A stretch of 64,000 nucleotides of DNA. It comes from Trichosphaerium sp. ATCC 40318. Its lineage: Eukaryota > Protista > Tubulinea. This document shows, piece by piece, positions 5,587-51,719 of this stretch; the stretch's first letter is position 1, and each line of letters begins with the position of its first letter. A program made the position numbers and the translations under genes. A model generated the notes under the pieces. That model was given only the letters and a program-made list of their open reading frames with translations. It did no database searches and had not been told where the DNA came from. Location of the stretch: the NCBI GenBank assembly GCA_038496445.1, contig JALMLS010000309.1, positions 310,001 through 374,000 of the forward strand, read 5' to 3'.

Positions 5587-8500
5587 CTACAATTCGTTAC
5601 CATCACCCGTAGAAGCTTTCCCAATATGATCTGTTGTCACCGCTTTCTTGAGCTTAGGTTGATCTTGAGAACCAAAATCGTCGCTTGAGATTTTTTTGTT
5701 GAAGCTTCTCAAAGAAAAGTATTGCCTATCCGGCTTCGAGTGACTTGTTAGCTTTTTTCTTTCTTTACGGCTCTTCCTGTTATTTAGCAACGTCTGACGC
5801 GCCGATTTTTCGCCGGATTTCTTTAGTTTCTTCGTCTTCTCAACACTTTCTTTTTGTTTCTTAGCCTTGGACTTTCTGAGTGTAGCAGATTTTTTCTTCC
5901 CTTCATGGCTCTTTTTACTTGTTGGCGCTGCAGGAATACTTACAACTTTAGGAGGTTGCTTCGGTTGTTTAGCCCTGGAAGGAGGTGGCGTGCTTGGCGG
6001 ATGCGGTGATTTTTTGAGGTCGTCTACTCGAGGGAACGATGAGATTAAAGGCTCAGGTTTTGTAGGTTTTGTAGGTGGCGCTGATGCTGGTGTTGCTGGC
6101 GGTGGTGCCTGTACGGGTCCCGAAAGAGCTGATAGAGGATGTGGCACCATGGCCGGAGCTGCTACTGGTTTTGGTGGAGCAGGTGATTCTTTCGTATCAT
6201 TGGTTGTTTCTTTCGTGTCATCAGGTTGTTTAGGTTTGATGTCATGAGTGTCTGATGGAGGTCCATCTTCTGACTCACTTTCGGATTCTTCTGAGCTTGA
6301 ACTGGAGTCATCGAGTGGCGCAGAATTTGGTGTTTGGCGAGATGCAGTGAGCGAAGACGATATCATGTTAATAAGGTCGACATCTTTGGTTGGCATTGGC
6401 GGTGCTGGCTCTTTTTTTGGAGTATCTTCTTTCTTGACATCTTCTGTTTCAGTTGTGTCTTTGCTTTCACCTTCATCACCGTCAGACGCGGATGTTTCGG
6501 CCTCTGGGTTTGTTACAGGAGGTGCTTCTACACTGTCGGGTTCTTGAGTGTTGTTGGCTTCTCCCTCTTTGATGTCTTGAGCATCCACATCACTTGTTTC
6601 GTCCTTGGTGTCTTGATTTGTTTTGTCTTCAGTCGCATCAACCGCAGGGGTTTCTTCAGCTTTTTCTGCGTCACTGTCCTTTGCAGATTCATCCTCATTC
6701 TCCGTTTCTGTGGTAGTTTCTGTGTCAAGGGTTTCTGTTTCTGTGTCGACCTCATCAACTTTTTCAGTTGGCGTAGGTTGTGGCTTTGCCTGTGTGCTAG
6801 GTTCTGCCTCTTGCTCTTTTCGTATGCGTAGTCTGTCATATTTTTCGATAACAGCAAGGACTACAGTGTGACTCTGGTCGTTTAGGCACGTTAACATGTC
6901 CAAATCTCCAGGAGGCCGCATTAAAGTAGGACCTAGCGAAGAAATGTTAAGAGGTTGTACTGGAAGTGAGCAAGAGGCGTACCAAATATTGTAGCGAGGT
7001 TGTTCTTGTGCATGAGATTGACATCTGAATTTTTAGCAACTTCGACAATGAGCCCAAATACAGCCTCTACAATTTAGTGAGATAAAGACGCACGTGTACC
7101 ACGTACCAATTACATTAAAATTCAGCGGAGGTAGTTCAGCTAATTTTGCGTCCAAGAGCTTATCTAGAATAACTGGGTCTGATCCTTCTGCGTCATTGAA
7201 GCTTGCTTGAAGAGAGATGGTAAGCTTGGTTGCCTGTAATTAACCTTAACGTACAAACCATGTCAATGAGGGGTTGATACAGCGTATACGTGAAAAGAGG
7301 TTCAGGCATTTCTCGCAACAACTAGTAACTATGTTAGTGAGAAGAACGCCTTGAGAGATGTACCTTTTTAAAAAATTCAGCGACAGCATGTGTTTCGCAT
7401 GATGGTGCAATACCTAATGATAATGTATCAACCCCCTTTTATTTGAAAAAAAGAGGCATACCACCGAGGAAGGTTAGTTCCGAGCTGTATAGTTTTCTAG
7501 CCATGTCTTCAACGACAAGTTGATTTCCAGCAACTCGAAATATACCCTCTATTTTTGTTGCTACACGTTTTTGTCAGTTGCATTGCTTCGCAGTGTGTTC
7601 CTTGCCTTGTAGATGCAGGAAATCTATAGCAAGCGCGATAACACGAGGAATTATTTCTGGACTCGCGTCTAGTGAGGCCATTTGCTCTAGCGATAAACCA
7701 AACACAGAATCTCTGTCTAAGAAAGGTTTAAGCTGGGTCACGTGCGAAATTTGGAATTTAATTTTGTGGGAAAAATAGAAAAAAGATCTGGGAGCAGATA
7801 GTTACCTGGATCATTCGCTATTGCTTGTTTTTGTTCCTTTCGTGTTTGTATAAACTTGTTTAATACCTTTTCTTTGCGTTTCTTTGTTAACGATGCCTTT
7901 TTGGATTCCAGAGCGAGTTTTTGTTCTTCAACTTGGTATTGAACTGAAAGTAAAAAAAAAAAAAACCATCAGTACTAAAACAACCAGATATGTAATGGAA
8001 TTCCATGCCACGTACTATGAAGTCCAGTCATTTCATCGTTTGACAGCGTTGGCCTACGGACGAAAAACGGTTCGCTCCTTGGTTGCTAACAAGCCATGAG
8101 TTAGAAATGAAAAGGAGGTTATAGCCCTTATTTGTACCGATCCCATTTTCATTCTTGCTGCTTTACCTTTAAATAATAGTCAGATTCATATGCTTACTAC
8201 GCATCATACCATTTGCATGTCCTTTATCCTTTGCATGTCTTCCAACGTCGGGCCTTACTACATGACCCAGAAATTGCGCCATTTTTTCTCTCTGTGCGTC
8301 TCGCTGGCCCATAGCTGGTATAACTGGAAATTGTTCATCAACAAGCTGTTCTCCAGTTACTTTGCTACAATACTGTTACCACGTGATTTATCACATGACT
8401 AATGTATTATCGAGTGACGTACTGCGTTATTCTAACGAAACTCTTTGGAAACCAGCCTTAGTAGTAATGTCAATATTATTTAAAATAACCAGAACCAAGA

Positions 8501-44244: not shown

Positions 44245-45891
44245 ATGAACGCATCAAAAGAATGGATTGAATCACGTGTTGGCTCACAACAGAGCAATGA
44301 GCACTATGAAAAATTATATCAGCATTACTCCTCAAAGTGCGTAGAATAGCGTTAAAAATCGCATTATGTATTTAAACCGAGCCTATCTTTTAAACTGAAA
44401 CAATTTATTTGATTATCGCTCTAATAACGCCAATTAACACCAAAAAGGCTTTGGCATCAACTCACCGTATACGTGGAGGGTTTGTTATCCCAAGAAAATG
44501 CACTTAGCAACGAACAGCTACTGGAGCTACACAACTGCTTTCTAAAGGAGTTTGCAGGCCGTTTGAATCCTCGCGCCTACGCTCGTATTGCTGTGCGCGT
44601 TTGTGCGTTTATTGAGCCAGCAAAGCGACCTGAATTCCTAGAGGAGGCTGGATCTATTAGTTCTGTACAGAGAGAACCTTACGCCGATGCTTTAATTTCA
44701 GCTGCAAAAGCTTCAAGTTTGGTAACTGGCAGTACAGCTCCTACAAAGGAAGACAAAGCGCAAGCCAAAACACATATTGCGAACGCTGAAAAAACAATCG
44801 AGTTTGCTTCTGCTGACGCTATTGTTGACACCTTCACTACCGCTGCTATTTACAAGGCACAAGCAGAGCTAAGCAAAGTACGTCATTTTACAACCAACGG
44901 TTGAGAATCAAAGTCGTTATTTGGTGGTTTTTTATTTGCCAAATTTTTATTATATTTTACTGCTTCTACCTCTTGTTGTGCCCTAACAGATTTTATTTTA
45001 TTAGGTTAGTGGTGACCCTGTCGGATTCTTTAAAAATGGATTATCTTATCTCGCCTACACACCTCTTGAAACACTTCGTACTAATGATAGATTAAACTGG
45101 GCTGCAAATCTTGGTATTGCTGCTCTTATTGGAAAAGAGATTTACAACTTTGGAGAGCTGGTAACCACTCATTTATTTTGTCTCTACTCGCTTGTCTCTA
45201 CTCGCTTTGTTTTCTCTAACATTTTTTAATGCGTAGACTACACATCCAATCTTGAAGTCTCTTGAAGGCACTGGTCATCAATGGTTAGCAACAATGTTAA
45301 AAATCTTTAACGAAGGAGATATCGTCCAATATAAAAAGTTTTTGAATGAATACGCTGGTCAGCTCAAGGAACAAGTAAGTTTTTGCTATAAAACCTAAAT
45401 AGAACGTGTCAATTTTACGTGTGTGCTAACAAAGTTTTAATAGCTCGATTTGGTTAATAATCAAGCGACACTTGAAGCCAAAATCGCTGTTCTCTCCTTG
45501 ATCCAATTGGTTTTCTCTAAGCCATCAGATGATCGTACTATTACATTTGATACTATCGCTAAACACACACAACTCCCTGTAGATCATGTACGACACATTT
45601 CTGATTACGAACTATTTTAGAACCTGAAATTTTTTTGGGTTTTTTTTTAGACGTTATTTCTGACATGTGTTCTAGGTTGAGCGATTGGTTATGAAGGCAC
45701 AATCACTAAAATTGATTAGAGGAACCATTGACCAAGTAAAACAGCGCGTTATTGTAACTTGGGTGCAACCTCGTGTCTTGGAGCTCTCACAAGTCGTTGC
45801 CATGACAGAACGCCTCGGAGAATGGTGTAATGGCGTCAAGGAAGCCTTAAACTTGTTTCAAGCTCATGATACAACAGTAGCTACTGTTTAA
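44245..45891 (+). CDS. RPN9: 26S proteasome lid subunit Rpn9/PSMD13
   Basis: KLWHQLT, IYNFGELL.HPIL, VERLVMKA.SLKLIRGTIDQV..VTWVQPRVL (PCI domain). Confidence 0.95.
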
Positions 45892-46061
45892 ACACTCAAG
45901 GATTAAAATAAAAATCTTTTGTAACTTGTGAATTCGCTGCGTGTAGCGTGCATGTATGCTTCGTGCCAAAGAATATTTCAGTGTTTATTTTAGTGGCCGG
46001 AAAAGTGGTGAGTCAAACTAAGTACTACAGAGGCAGACAAGCGCCAAAACCTGTGGAAGAC

Positions 46062-46486
46062 ATGAATAGTAGGTTTATTAAAGGTGCTAGGTTACCGTCG
46101 CGTAAACTAGCTATGCAAAAGCGTATGGCTTGCGAATTATTCGGCAAGGCCTCTCCTAGGAGGTAAGGGCAGGTTGGTAGTTAATACTAATGATTTTGTA
46201 GAGTATGGCTTGATCCAAACAAAAAGGTCGAAATATCAAAAGCAAGAACACGTAATAGCGATTAAACGCAATTTTTTTGGTAACTATTGATTTAGGTCAA
46301 GCAATACGCGAATTGATCGCTAAGGACGTCATAATGATAAAAATAACGCGTAGGGGCATGACACAGGGGCTTTTACCAAGTATGAAAGACCATCTCAACC
46401 ATCCAGTCGTACAACGCATTAAAAAAGAAGTAAAAGCGGCTGAAATCGTACAGCACCAACAAGAGCTCACAGAAAACGAAGCGTAA
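46062..46486 (+). CDS. Truncated ribosomal protein eL19-like paralogue (~113 aa)
   Basis: LAMQKRMACELFG..RRVWLDPNKKVEISKARTRQAIRELIAKDVI matches the eL19 N-terminal domain; two GT-AG introns; unrelated C-terminus. Confidence 0.75.
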
Positions 46487-47450
46487 ACCAAACCAAGCTC
46501 AATACTGAACTCCAACAACAATTTTTGTAAACAGTGTATAATGCCCTCTAAATGTATGTCAATTCCAGAAACACAACGTTATAGTTTCTTTTTCGCGTTA
46601 CGTGCGGTTACACTGGCACGTGCAACAAAAATCGGCCAAGTTTGTAAATCAGCGCAGACCATCCTCCTTAATGGTACGCCATGTAAGGATGAGAACGCTG
46701 CGTCAGTTCAACATAAGTTTGGGTTGTTAAAGTACGGTTGCCTGTCCAACTTGTGATTTTACTATGAGAACAAATTACGAATAACTAACAACAAAAAGAA
46801 CTGTATTCCGAAGTTTATTTGAAGCTACGTTCAGTGAGTATGAGTTATGAACCTGGTGGAGGCTAGACCAATTAGTTTTATGAAAAACTATTGACGTTGG
46901 TTTCAAGCTTGCTGAGGGTACCTACGAGAGCGTGTACCGCCTAAACGTTGTCCACATACTTCAAGCTAATGATAGCCTATATTATGCTTCGTGGATGCAG
47001 ACAGTAGTATGCCCTGCAACAGGCAGAGTGCAGGATCACTTTCAAAAATTGGATAGCTGAAAATAAGGCACCTTCATATGGCACAGTTTATCTAGCTATC
47101 TTAGAATGTCGCCTTTTCCAAAATCTAATCCATTCGCTTGTAGAACAGACTCACGTATTTTTGAAAACGATATTTGAATATGGTTACACTACTTCCTACT
47201 GTTTTATGTCACCATTGATGCCGTTAAAAGTCATCAAAACATACTAGGTGGTTGTAAGAGATAAGGATAACTAGTTCAGTATTTGGCATATCCACGTGAT
47301 TAATGAATTAGCGGGAACAAAAATGGTCTTTTTATTAACTCACATTGTATTATTCCAATAATGTTCCTTTTTTTATTTAAGGTTTACTCAAAACAAGCAA
47401 CCAGATTAACATTGATAGAGTTCGAAGTGATAAACAAAAACGTAAGTGTC

Positions 47451-48518
47451 TTAGCGAGGAAAATATAGTGGCATTAGTTCATTGTACGCCAGCCAATCGA
47501 TTTTGTTAAATATAACAAATACTATCTTTGTCATGCTATAAGATCTCTTAGTAACGTTTTCTGGTGTTAACTCAAAAAGAAGCATACCTCTTGATATTTT
47601 GTGTATTTTCGAGCCAGTGTCGTAACATGCCAAGTGCGACATGTGCGCAAAACCTAGGATCGAATCTATATGCTCCAGTACTTGTACAACACAAAGCCAG
47701 CGTTTTAACATCATGTCTTATGGCTTGTTGCAAGACTGTGCGATAACTGGAGCGAAGTAAGGGCAATCCTTCCTTCTCTGTATGCAAGTCCCTAAAAGCA
47801 CTTGAGATACACTCCTCTGGAATTCTCTTTAGTGTACCTATTTGGACCTGTAATAGTGTTAAGGAGTTATTAACATAGCAGTAAAGGTGTACCGACTGTG
47901 TGGAGGACGTATTTGCATTTTAGTTTTCCAAAAGCTTTTGTTGTTTTTGTTTGACCATGACGACATCCATCAAGTGGTATACAAGCTTCTTTGAGCTCAG
48001 GACCTTATCTAATTAGTATAAAATAACATCGTATATATCAACTATACCAGCAGCAGCATGTATAGCTCTGTCTATACCACCTAAGTGATCAACAAATAAG
48101 TTATGACATTTCAACACTTCTACTTTTTCGACTAAAAAAAAAATGCACCTCCGCCAAGAAGAGATGGTCTCGCAGCGTTCACAATTGCATCTAGGTGGTG
48201 TCATGAGACTCTATTTGGCACTTACAGCGTACTTACCACAGTTTATAGAAGTGATATCTTTTGTGAAATAAAGTTAGCAACATGACACGTTGACATTTTT
48301 TTTCTGTTTTTTTTTTTGGGGTTTTGCGTACCACCATACCATATCGCTACTTTTGCGTTTATTGTCTCGTTTTTGACAACAGTTGAGTAGAACGCTTTGA
48401 ACTGAGTATCAACAGCGTCGTCGATTACTTTTAAATGCGTAGATCGCTCTATTGGTTCTATATCGCTTACGTATTCTCCCCAAGGGCATATATCAGCAAT
48501 ATGCAGCTCTGATGTCAT
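47451..48518 (-). CDS. Macrodomain protein (MacroD-type ADP-ribosylhydrolase-like)
   Basis: GDIT..CDAIVNAA..LLGGGGIDRAIHAAAGPEL, YVLHTVGP, ALCCTSTGAYRF. Confidence 0.9.
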
Positions 48519-48736
48519 AACTTAAGGTTCTAATTAAAAAAAAACATGTCAACTGTTTTCTACGTCGACAATCACGTTTTTCCAGTTTGGGAATGCTAGG
48601 CGCTAGCCAACAAAAGGAAATTGTTCGATTCAAACGCAAAGCAAGCTTGGGAGAATGACAGAGAAGAGTAAACAGTTTCACATCTGTAAAGTTCCAAAGT
48701 CACGTAAAAGTACATTTTTTTTACCAGCACATTGCT

Positions 48737-48995
48737 TAGAGGTGGTCGTTGTCCGGTCTCGGCTAAGCCGCTATAAAATCAGTAGCCGGTTAACCGAGGG
48801 ATAACCCTTAAAAAGTGAGATTTTGTTGGTGTGTACCACATGCTTTTTTTAAGTTCTACGTGCTCTCAATGGCTTTGACATACGTTTGTTCGACACATAG
48901 GTCCAAAGCCTAGTATCAAGCAAAAACATGCCAAAAAGGTTGGAGTTTTCTCTTGTTTTTCTTAGCCGGTTTATAGCCTTTAGCGACCACCTCTA
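48737..48995. mobile_element. hAT-type MITE, copy 1
   Basis: TIR TAGAGGTGGTCG..CGACCACCTCTA; 8-bp TSD ACATTGCT/ACATTGCC; subterminal TAGCCGG motifs; homologous to 56804-57097. Confidence 0.88.
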
Positions 48996-49128
48996 ACATT
49001 GCCGAAGTTTCCCATGTTTCTATTACTTTGATGTTAGTAGTTGTTTTATTATAATATAAAGAAGGTGCAGTTGTTGGAGTATGTAGAGATAAGGTTTATT
49101 CTTAGCAAGTACACAACAATATTTATTT

Positions 49129-49520
49129 TTATTCTTGATTTTGGACTATCACGAAATCAATGTAAGGTGAAGGGGCGGGTGAAACGTTAACACAAGAAGT
49201 TTTGATTGTTTCGTCTACCAGACTTATGACACAAACATTTTGAATCTGAGTAGATCCTGGTGCAAAATCGCTTGAAACGTTTGAAGTATAGAATATTTTT
49301 TCTTTGCTGTCGTATGCAACAGAATAAAACTTATCTTCCATTGATTCACCAATATATATTGGATTACATTGTACAGGATTATTACCGGTCCATCGATATG
49401 GCGCCCACTGTTGAAGTAAAAATGAAGGTAGTAGCAATAGAATAGAAAGAAATAAAATCAATCTTGTTCAATTCTTCATCATAGTCTAGTACTGTAGCAT
49501 AATACGTTGACACGAAACTT
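49129..49520 (-). CDS. Hypothetical coding fragment (5' end unresolved)
   Basis: Open exon(s) ending ..PYIDFVIVQNQE*; no clean start exon found. Confidence 0.25.
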
Positions 49521-49806
49521 TCCATTTTGCACTGCTAAAAACACAAAGGATAAATTGAGTACAAGGAATAGCAGATTTTGTGTGTTACACACGTGACGTG
49601 ACGTACTTTTACTATATCAATTGAAAACAACTCAATAACGCATTTTAAAATTATATGGCCATTTTTCCATTTCGTAAACACCGTAACATGAAGTTTTTGA
49701 CAGGTTTTGGTCTATGTTTGTTCAATTCTTGTTTTCATTGTAACATTGTTATTGAGTATATGTACTATTGATCTTGGGTGTTGTCATTAACAGCACTAAG
49801 CCATAG

Positions 49807-51719
49807 TCAAACGGTTATTTTTTGTACCAGTTCTACCACATGAGCCAGTGATGGTTGGGTTACATTAGACTGTGCCGTGGAAAGAAAAAAAAAAGTATTA
49901 AAGGTTCCTAAACAAGCTAAAACTCAAACTTTATTCATGAATAAGCAGCTAACAAACTTTTACTCCGTCAGTCGCCTGCTTATACTCTTGAAGCTGAATT
50001 ACGAGTCTAAAGTTGTGTACTGCCAAATTTTGAATTTCGAAGACAAGTGGGACTCTTTTAGTGAATAGCTGTCCATCTCTTATATTTGCAGCTAGCGAGT
50101 ATGCAACAACAGAACGTCCAGTTGTGATTTTGGAAGTATACATAGCTTTGTTATCTACCTTCTCTTTGTAAACTACCGCTGTGCTGTAGTCTTCTTGAGA
50201 AGTGAATTGTCGGATCAAAGAAGTCACATACTAAAGGATTTGGTTTAGCAAGCACGTGATATTGTGAAACAACATTAGAGAGACAGACGTACATCTCTAG
50301 AAATCAAACAGCCAAAAGAAGGCGTATTCATACACATGTTGTTCTCACCATTCGCTTTGATTGAGAAGTAGCCTCCTGAGAATTGATCATGTGTTGAGGA
50401 AAATTTAGGTCCACAAATACGAGATGTAAAAATGGTATTGTTATGTCCTGGCGTGTAGTACAATTGTTGCGAAAATTTATCTGCTAGCGAAGCACTAAAC
50501 TGCCACTCATCTTTTATACTTTCCTCATTGTATACTTTGACACCCACATTAAAGAAAACACCTTCCCCAACAACACCCTCGTCCTTCATCTCTGTACTGT
50601 TTAAGAGCGGTACCTAAAAAACATATTGAGCCAAAAAAGGAAACCACTTTTTTGTTGCCGAGTTAACAACGCACAGGTTGTTTAGAGTGGAGAGACAGTG
50701 GGTCATACATGCTATGTTCACACCACTTCTTTGCAACAAGGGTAGTGTTAAACAACTCTATGTTATTGGTTATGGCTGGTGTTAAGAAAAACCGAACAGC
50801 CATAGAAGCACATGATAGAAAAGCTGTAAACAAAAAGCGTTAAAACAGGAAAAAAAGTAGAAAAAGAAAACAAGTTGACGTACGTAATGGTATCCTAAAT
50901 GGTTCCTCGTAACATTTTTCTAGAAATTTTATAGCCATCATAGTATTGAGATCACCCTTTATTTCTCCGTTTTGCATATAAGCAAGATCTCTGGCTTGAG
51001 TTAACTTAAACTCTGTCATTATTTCACAACGTTCTCTAATACTTGTTTTAACAACACAATATTTGCCTTCATAGCCTTCTCTGCAGTCACACTCTCCAGT
51101 ACCAACATCACAGCTAGTAAAACATCCTCCAGAACAAGGATGTTGACAGTCGTTACCCCATTTAAGGTCATAACAATCATAACAAGCACCTGTCATTTGA
51201 CAACCATTATGGCAGTTTGATGAGCACTTGTGTTCACATTTATCTCCATAAAAATCTGCAACAACAATAAACGAGCGAGACACCAAAGTAAAAGTGCAAT
51301 TAATGCAACAACGGTGGGCATAATGAACAAAAAAACGGTTTTGAAAGAAAATACAACAAAAACAACGTTATTGATTGCTGATCGTACTGGGTTTGCATTT
51401 TTCGCATACTAAGCCATCATCGGCGCATTTTAAACACTTTTTTGAATTGCATGGGTATGTCTTTTTACATACTCCTGTATGCTGGTTGCACACCTGGCAG
51501 TCGTCATCGCATGTTTTGGAGCAATATTGGCCCCAAAAGCCATGGGTACAATTTGAGCACAAACCTGGCGTTATTCGTTAGTAGCGCATTAGTGAAGTCG
51601 GATATACCGTATCTACATGCTCCATCTTCACAGTTGTTGCAAGAATCAGCACCGTCGCAGTATGGTAGCGTAATAAGTATACACAACCCAACAGCGAGTA
51701 AATATTGAACTGATGCCAT
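49807..51719 (-). CDS. Secreted protein with N-terminal EGF-like Cys-rich repeats and an uncharacterised C-terminal domain
   Basis: Signal peptide MASVQYLLAVGLCILITLPYCDG; repeated C..C..GFWG..C / C.EGYEG.YC motifs. Confidence 0.7.

Follow-up and report, generated by a model that had tools for sequence, protein, structure and literature searches.

A spliced and transcribed eL19 paralogue that keeps only the N-terminal domain

The window, i.e. the whole 64-kb stretch of DNA analysed here, contains at positions 46062-46486 of the plus strand a gene of three exons (101+50+191 nt), which together with its product is referred to as the stub in the following. The joined coding sequence of 342 nt comprises 113 codons and one terminal stop. 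Exon 1 (46062..46162) begins with the ATG and contains codons 1-33 and two bases of codon 34. The start codon has an A at position -3 and is the first in-frame ATG downstream of an upstream stop. Intron 1 (46163..46201, 39 nt) shows the ends GT..AG (GTAAGG...TAG) and lies in phase 2 in codon 34, an Arg codon, immediately upstream of the sequence coding for VWLDPN. Exon 2 (46202..46251) completes codon 34 with its last base, continues with codons 35-50 (VWLDPNKKVEISKART), and ends after the first base of codon 51. Intron 2 (46252..46295, 44 nt) is likewise of the GT..AG type (GTAATA...TAG) and interrupts the Arg codon (C|GT) of TR|Q in phase 1. Exon 3 (46296..46486) includes the TAA stop codon at 46484-46486. 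All these features are on the plus strand.

The first 14 codons (46062..46103) encode an N-terminal extension with four Arg/Lys, no Asp or Glu, and a pI of 12; the N-terminus, MNSRFIKGARLPSR, contains four basic and no acidic residues. The Gln of the QKR motif is residue 19 of the stub, compared with residue 7 in most eukaryote-type eL19 ORFs, and the stub exceeds the canonical eL19 N-terminus by 12 residues. Besides the extension, exon 1, which can be aligned with residues 1-20 of eL19, encodes helix 1 (QKRMA) of the L19e N-terminal domain. The first part of exon 3 (46296..46342), which consists of the rest of codon 51 and codons 52-66 (QAIRELIAKDVIMIK), corresponds to the last helix and strand of this domain. 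The eL19 homology ends here, in the middle of the exon. The remainder of exon 3 (46343..46486) is a novel tail of codons 67-113 followed by the TAA, and a 3' UTR extends over 46487..46569. The sequence-only reading had described an intact three-exon gene of about 113 amino acids with an Arg/Lys-rich, acid-free N-terminus. Both parts of this description are confirmed, the first by the joined exons and the second by the 12-residue basic extension.

Transcription was assessed with Logan contigs of four public runs from four studies (X1, X2, X6, and X9), which were aligned to positions 44500-50000. These data are short assembled contigs. We regard the four runs as transcript assemblies, the run type itself being a guess, because their contigs also lack the four introns of the upstream gene and cover nothing but exons. 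The junction of intron 1 (46162/46202) was found exactly in contigs of all four runs, and the junction of intron 2 (46251/46296) exactly in contigs of X1, X2, and X6. A single X1 contig spans 46127-46505 across both junctions. The RNA-seq check suggested together with the sequence-only reading thus agrees with the predicted removal of both introns. The contigs of two runs continue past the TAA and end 20-85 nt downstream of the stop, at 46505 (X1) and 46569 (X2). No splice joint linking the gene to anything upstream or downstream was present in the contigs of the four runs, and none of the runs has any coverage between 46708 and 47259. The further exons that, according to the sequence-only reading, might restore a full-length eL19 are therefore not joined to the stub. 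Contig depth, a poor measure for ranking, is of the same order as for the neighbouring proteasome-lid gene and not obviously at the level of a ribosomal protein gene. Just two polymorphisms were seen in the coding sequence: 46330 C>A (X6), which is synonymous in codon 62, and 46424 A>G (X1 and X2), which changes Lys94 to Glu (K94E).

The upstream neighbour at 44500-45895 (+) is a gene similar to the proteasome-lid subunit Rpn9/PSMD13, with a weak match to the Rpn9 C-terminal helix (19.2 bits, below the cut-off). Its four GT..AG introns are confirmed by transcript contigs, and its coding sequence ends at 45891, about 170 nt upstream of the ATG of the stub. The downstream neighbour at 47369-48531 is located on the minus strand and contains a Macro domain (PF01661, 30.4 bits on one exon). 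Several CT..AC junctions, corresponding to GT..AG on the minus strand, were found for this gene in the contigs. One further junction, 47794/47891 in X6, shows odd ends (AA..GT) and five extra letters, and several differences are found in X6 at 47411-47764. The longest ORF of the window (5587-6921, minus strand, 444 aa, ATG start) matched no Pfam family and had no relative at E <= 1e-10 in a word search.

The relationship of the product to eL19 was examined with two locally built profiles, and the joined product was scored against these local profiles only. The archaeal profile was made from about 110 archaeal L19e ORFs, which were obtained from 120 loci of prokaryotic genomes, nearly all of them archaeal, with a degenerate DNA pattern for the N-terminal signature. 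The ORFs of the archaeal reference loci are named 50S ribosomal protein L19e and carry both PF01280 and PF25476; PF01280, the L19e N-terminal domain of 53 positions, matches them at residues 2-54. The eukaryote-type profile was made from 26 full-length eL19 ORFs of 120 metagenome and metatranscriptome loci fetched with a eukaryote-type pattern. The joined product scored 44.0 bits against the archaeal profile (E 6.9e-12 in a set of 5001 sequences), compared with 15.2 bits for the highest-scoring of 5000 shuffles; against the eukaryote-type profile it scored 41.2 bits. With both profiles residues 15-66 were aligned to profile positions 3-53, the stretch which PF01280 occupies in the reference proteins. 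By these local profiles, rather than by the Pfam model, the stub contains an L19e N-terminal domain. The eL19 signature noticed in the sequence-only reading is thus genuine, given the distance between the score and the best shuffle.

When taken exon by exon, exon 1, exon 2, and the beginning of exon 3 can be placed in order onto eL19. Of 3690 six-frame fragments of the window, the one corresponding to exon 2 is the sole match to the L19e profile (18.6 bits, E 3e-4). With single exons, neither the Pfam searches (nothing relevant) nor the PDB sequence searches (no match) were informative, the pieces being too short. The eL19 profile itself matched 75 solved structures, all of which are ordinary ribosomal eL19 chains (60 of them listed). 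The core of the family is kept in the stub, namely QKR.A, VWLDPN, EI..A, and R.IR.LI. At profile columns 18 and 48 the stub has lost glycines that are near-universal, and its first loop contains one additional residue. Consequently the fixed-spacing signature Q-[KR]-R-x-A ... G-x3-[IV]-W-x-D-P is absent from the stub, which has Ser in the Gly column and the extra loop residue. As a DNA pattern, this fixed-spacing signature retrieves L19e genes that are nearly all archaeal.

The match ends at profile position 53, whereas the archaeal profile has 151 positions and the eukaryote-type profile 194; therefore the middle domain and the C-terminal helix are absent. No signal for PF25476 (L19e_C, the basic GxxKGxGxRKG region and the following helices) was detected in the protein, and no six-frame fragment of the 64-kb window matched the profile from position 54 onward (54-151) above noise. 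The sequence-only reading had stated that the GRH.G.G.RKG middle domain and the C-terminal bridge helix are missing, and the end of the profile match together with the scan of the window bears this out. The basic middle region and the C-terminal helices are truly absent and not hidden in unrecognised exons; downstream exons of this kind are ruled out by the 3' ends of the contigs and by the lack of a match to profile positions 54-151 in the window. The stub is an eL19 paralogue which keeps only the N-terminal domain.

The tail shows no detectable likeness to eL19, and a second domain scored -2.4 bits with the eukaryote-type profile. It has a net charge of +1 compared with +9 for the domain, and the whole stub has +14 compared with a median of +38 for whole eL19. 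For exon 3 alone, AlphaFold2 run on the single sequence predicted helices at positions 29-33 and 36-61 of the exon with a mean pLDDT of 82. At the local base composition, 47 consecutive codons would remain free of stops with a probability of 0.047. Codons 71-104 of the tail (46355-46456) resemble a repeat unit of about 45 residues, QQGL..S......HP..Q.......TQH, of P0001 (L241:5001-7717), an 845-residue repeat protein of the unrelated eukaryotic assembly GCA_014905825.1. The library-wide E value is 2.9e-5 summed over three units, and the tail is 30-38% identical to the unit over about 33 residues. This likeness may be due to chance, convergence, or a shared helical motif and is probably not due to homology.

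Intron 2 splits the Arg codon before the Gln after its first base (ACA C|GT...AG|GT CAA). We compared this position with eukaryote-type RPL19 loci. In 45 of the 117 evaluable loci the homologous Arg codon is interrupted in the same way (C|GT or A|GT) and downstream exons continuing the protein follow. Most of the remaining loci are intron-less at this codon, and many of these are probably cDNA-derived contigs. The pattern used for fetching the loci required an uninterrupted stretch at the site of intron 1, and the comparison therefore covers intron 2. Since intron 2 is found at the ancestral RPL19 position and phase, the stub is a DNA-level duplicate of an intron-containing gene and not a retrocopy. 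It inherited an ancestral RPL19 intron and arose by DNA duplication. The comparison of intron positions with canonical RPL19, which had been proposed with the sequence-only reading, hence yielded the same site and phase for intron 2 and strengthens the earlier argument that the retained introns speak against a processed pseudogene. A processed pseudogene or retrocopy of RPL19 is ruled out by the two spliceosomal introns, of which intron 2 is ancestral. Other exon boundaries that recur among the RPL19 loci lie near profile positions 29, 57, 79, 91, 119, and 142; together with the phase-1 ANSR|Q intron they provide convenient markers for tracing the evolution of RPL19 introns.

In a maximum-likelihood tree of 51 domain columns the stub is placed on the eukaryotic side of the archaea/eukaryote split with a support of 100/98. 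Its terminal branch has a length of 1.45 compared with a median of 0.11, i.e. 13 times the median. The stub is 43% identical to eukaryote-type domains (range 36-49%), whereas eukaryote-type eL19 domains are 73% identical to each other and 41% identical to the archaeal ones. Judged by sequence identity, the stub differs from eukaryotic eL19 as much as archaeal eL19 does (43% versus 41%). A viral or archaeal origin is ruled out by the ancestral spliceosomal intron and the position on the eukaryotic side of the tree. The L19e signature pattern found nothing in viral contigs. Canonical RPL19 is absent from the 64-kb window.

Relatives of the stub were searched for mainly with exon 3. A word search with the frame of exon 3 (69 residues) gave no match, and the stub itself was also missing. 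A 62-residue piece of exon 3 compared with 1.84 billion representative proteins found no orthologue, the only match being P0001, and no relative of exon 3 turned up in a scan of metagenome contigs. In a protein atlas exon 3 had low recognition and matched only unrelated helix-turn-helix clusters. A word search with a mixed alignment of archaeal and exon sequences returned archaeal L19e proteins as all of its best 120 matches, which confirms the reference set, with no eukaryotic or short relatives among them. The stub is missing from the protein libraries searched; therefore the gene is probably unannotated and its lineage poorly covered. A lack of orthologues had been named in the sequence-only reading as an outcome speaking against a functional gene. 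None was found indeed, but this blank is weak because only exon 3 was queried and the libraries lack the stub itself.

We considered how the state of the gene could be explained. First, the stub could be a functional protein; second, it could be a transcribed relic, and this is the main rival to the functional reading. The stub keeps 16 of the 24 columns in which eukaryote-type eL19 reaches a conservation of at least 95%, compared with 8 of 27 variable columns (hypergeometric P 0.009). The same test without the columns fixed by the fetching pattern gave a P of 0.10. When canonical coding sequences were allowed to decay neutrally in silico to 43% identity, the profile score of the stub was reached in 0/600 cases. 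The score was reached in 3% of the runs at 50% identity, in 27% at 55%, and in 57% at 60%; it would be unremarkable if the true identity to the parent gene were 0.55-0.60. With substitutions alone, leaving aside indels and splice sites, a 53-codon domain stayed free of stop codons in 22-34% of the neutral runs. We regard an intact start, four splice sites, and 113 codons at such divergence as moderate evidence for function, though not as proof.

Our best explanation, to which we commit ourselves only tentatively, is that the stub is a functional, lineage-restricted, soluble, and basic protein that uses the binding capacity of the N-domain as a competitor, a modulator, or a temporary stand-in of eL19. 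A duplication at the DNA level of the 5' part of an intron-containing RPL19 gave rise to the stub, one ancestral intron being kept. The encoded product consists of the 12-residue basic extension, a complete globular N-domain (residues 15-66), and a near-neutral tail of 47 residues that is predicted to be helical. The N-domain has evolved about 13 times faster than canonical eL19 while keeping the family core. In established ribosome structures, eL19 exposes its globular N-terminal domain at the surface, is anchored by a very basic middle region that runs into the rRNA, and reaches across to the 40S subunit with its long C-terminal helix. Lacking both the middle region and the bridge helix, the stub cannot take the place of eL19 as a stable structural component of the ribosome. 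The surface of its N-domain may still bind the usual partner, which would be either a patch of rRNA in the maturing large subunit or another protein. As a soluble basic module the stub would then transiently occupy the partners of the N-domain or compete for them and would not be a permanent component of the ribosome. We infer that the gene is translated and under selection and that its product has a binding target of this kind. The sequence-only reading had named a mitochondrion-targeted derivative, a placeholder in 60S assembly, and an extraribosomal RNA binder as candidate roles.

According to the second alternative, a partial RPL19 duplicate with its promoter and splice signals would still be expressed with a read-through tail, would have no function, and would drift neutrally towards loss. 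Still-transcribed partial duplicates are common. In the stub the homology breaks in the middle of exon 3 and not at a splice site, as expected of a duplication breakpoint or of read-through. The orthologue searches with exon 3 were blank, the terminal branch is extremely long, and the conserved glycines are lost. The retention of conserved columns (P 0.10 without those fixed by the pattern) and the profile score, which decay reaches in 27-57% of the runs at an identity of 0.55-0.60, are consistent with such a relic as well. Against it, the stub has retained its start codon, its four splice sites, and an unbroken frame of 113 codons despite an identity of 43%, and the domain shows just one indel, which is in frame. 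The open tail of 47 codons would arise by chance with a probability of only about 0.05, the differences avoid the family core, and spliced transcripts of the gene occur in four independent data sets. Taken together, we regard a relic without function as possible, though somewhat less likely than a functional protein.

A role in mitochondria, with the 14-residue basic extension as a presequence and the N-domain acting in the mitoribosome or in another mitochondrial RNA process, appears very unlikely. The extension with its 4 Arg/Lys, its lack of acidic residues, and its pI of 12 would suit a presequence, and Arg-x-Leu|Ala at residues 14-17 may resemble the R-3 cleavage motif of the matrix processing peptidase. 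Canonical eL19 N-termini are, however, equally basic and acid-free, and the feature thus does not discriminate. Moreover, Gly8 and Pro12 of the extension break an amphipathic helix. A literature search found nothing on a truncated eL19 and nothing linking eL19 to the mitoribosome. A mis-modelled gene, which with additional exons or another 3' end would encode the whole of eL19 and hence be an ordinary RPL19, would agree with transcript support from short contigs but can practically be dismissed, since contigs of two runs pass the TAA and end at 46505 and 46569, the depth is zero over 46708-47259 with the next transcribed gene on the other strand, nothing in the window matches profile positions 54-151 above noise, and the N-domain has diverged far too much to belong to a working eL19.

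The functional reading can be compared with known systems. With canonical eL19 (RPL19; PF01280 and PF25476) the stub shares the homology of the whole N-terminal domain, the phase-1 intron before the Q, and the grouping in the tree. In contrast to the canonical protein of about 200 residues it has only 113, lacks a PF25476-type region and the bridge helix, carries the additional 12 residues at its N-terminus, and shows 43% instead of 73% identity. Several assembly factors similar to ribosomal proteins hold the place of the respective ribosomal protein, as Rlp24 does for eL24, Mrt4 for uL10, and Rlp7 for uL30. By analogy with these factors the stub could be seen as a paralogue of a large-subunit protein which keeps the globular binding domain and differs in the rest. 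To our knowledge, Rlp24, Mrt4, and Rlp7 are all ancient and conserved across eukaryotes, whereas for the stub no orthologue was detectable with the 62-residue query of exon 3. No eL19-type placeholder was found described in the literature search. With partial or chimeric young genes the stub has in common that the 5' exons and an ancestral intron are kept, that the homology breaks within an exon (exon 3, at codon 66), that the tail is unrelated, and that the gene is lineage-restricted. A parent RPL19 is not present in the window. Unlike such genes, the stub shows a very large divergence for a young duplicate with the frame and the splice sites intact.

A more specific form of the functional reading, in which the N-domain protein is a lineage-specific ribosome-associated factor that serves as a stand-in or competitor of eL19 on maturing large subunits or has been recruited to the unusual mitochondrial translation system of this amoeba, we consider unlikely. 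If true, it would be a new addition to the short list of ribosomal protein mimics, and a recent one rather than one dating from the first eukaryotes. If the stub is a mere drifting remnant, it represents a clean, datable partial duplicate which keeps an ancestral intron, promoter activity, and an open frame. New factors of ribosome assembly or regulation may evolve from single-domain paralogues of ribosomal proteins, and an expressed paralogue of recent origin would illustrate how the path to ribosomal protein mimics begins.
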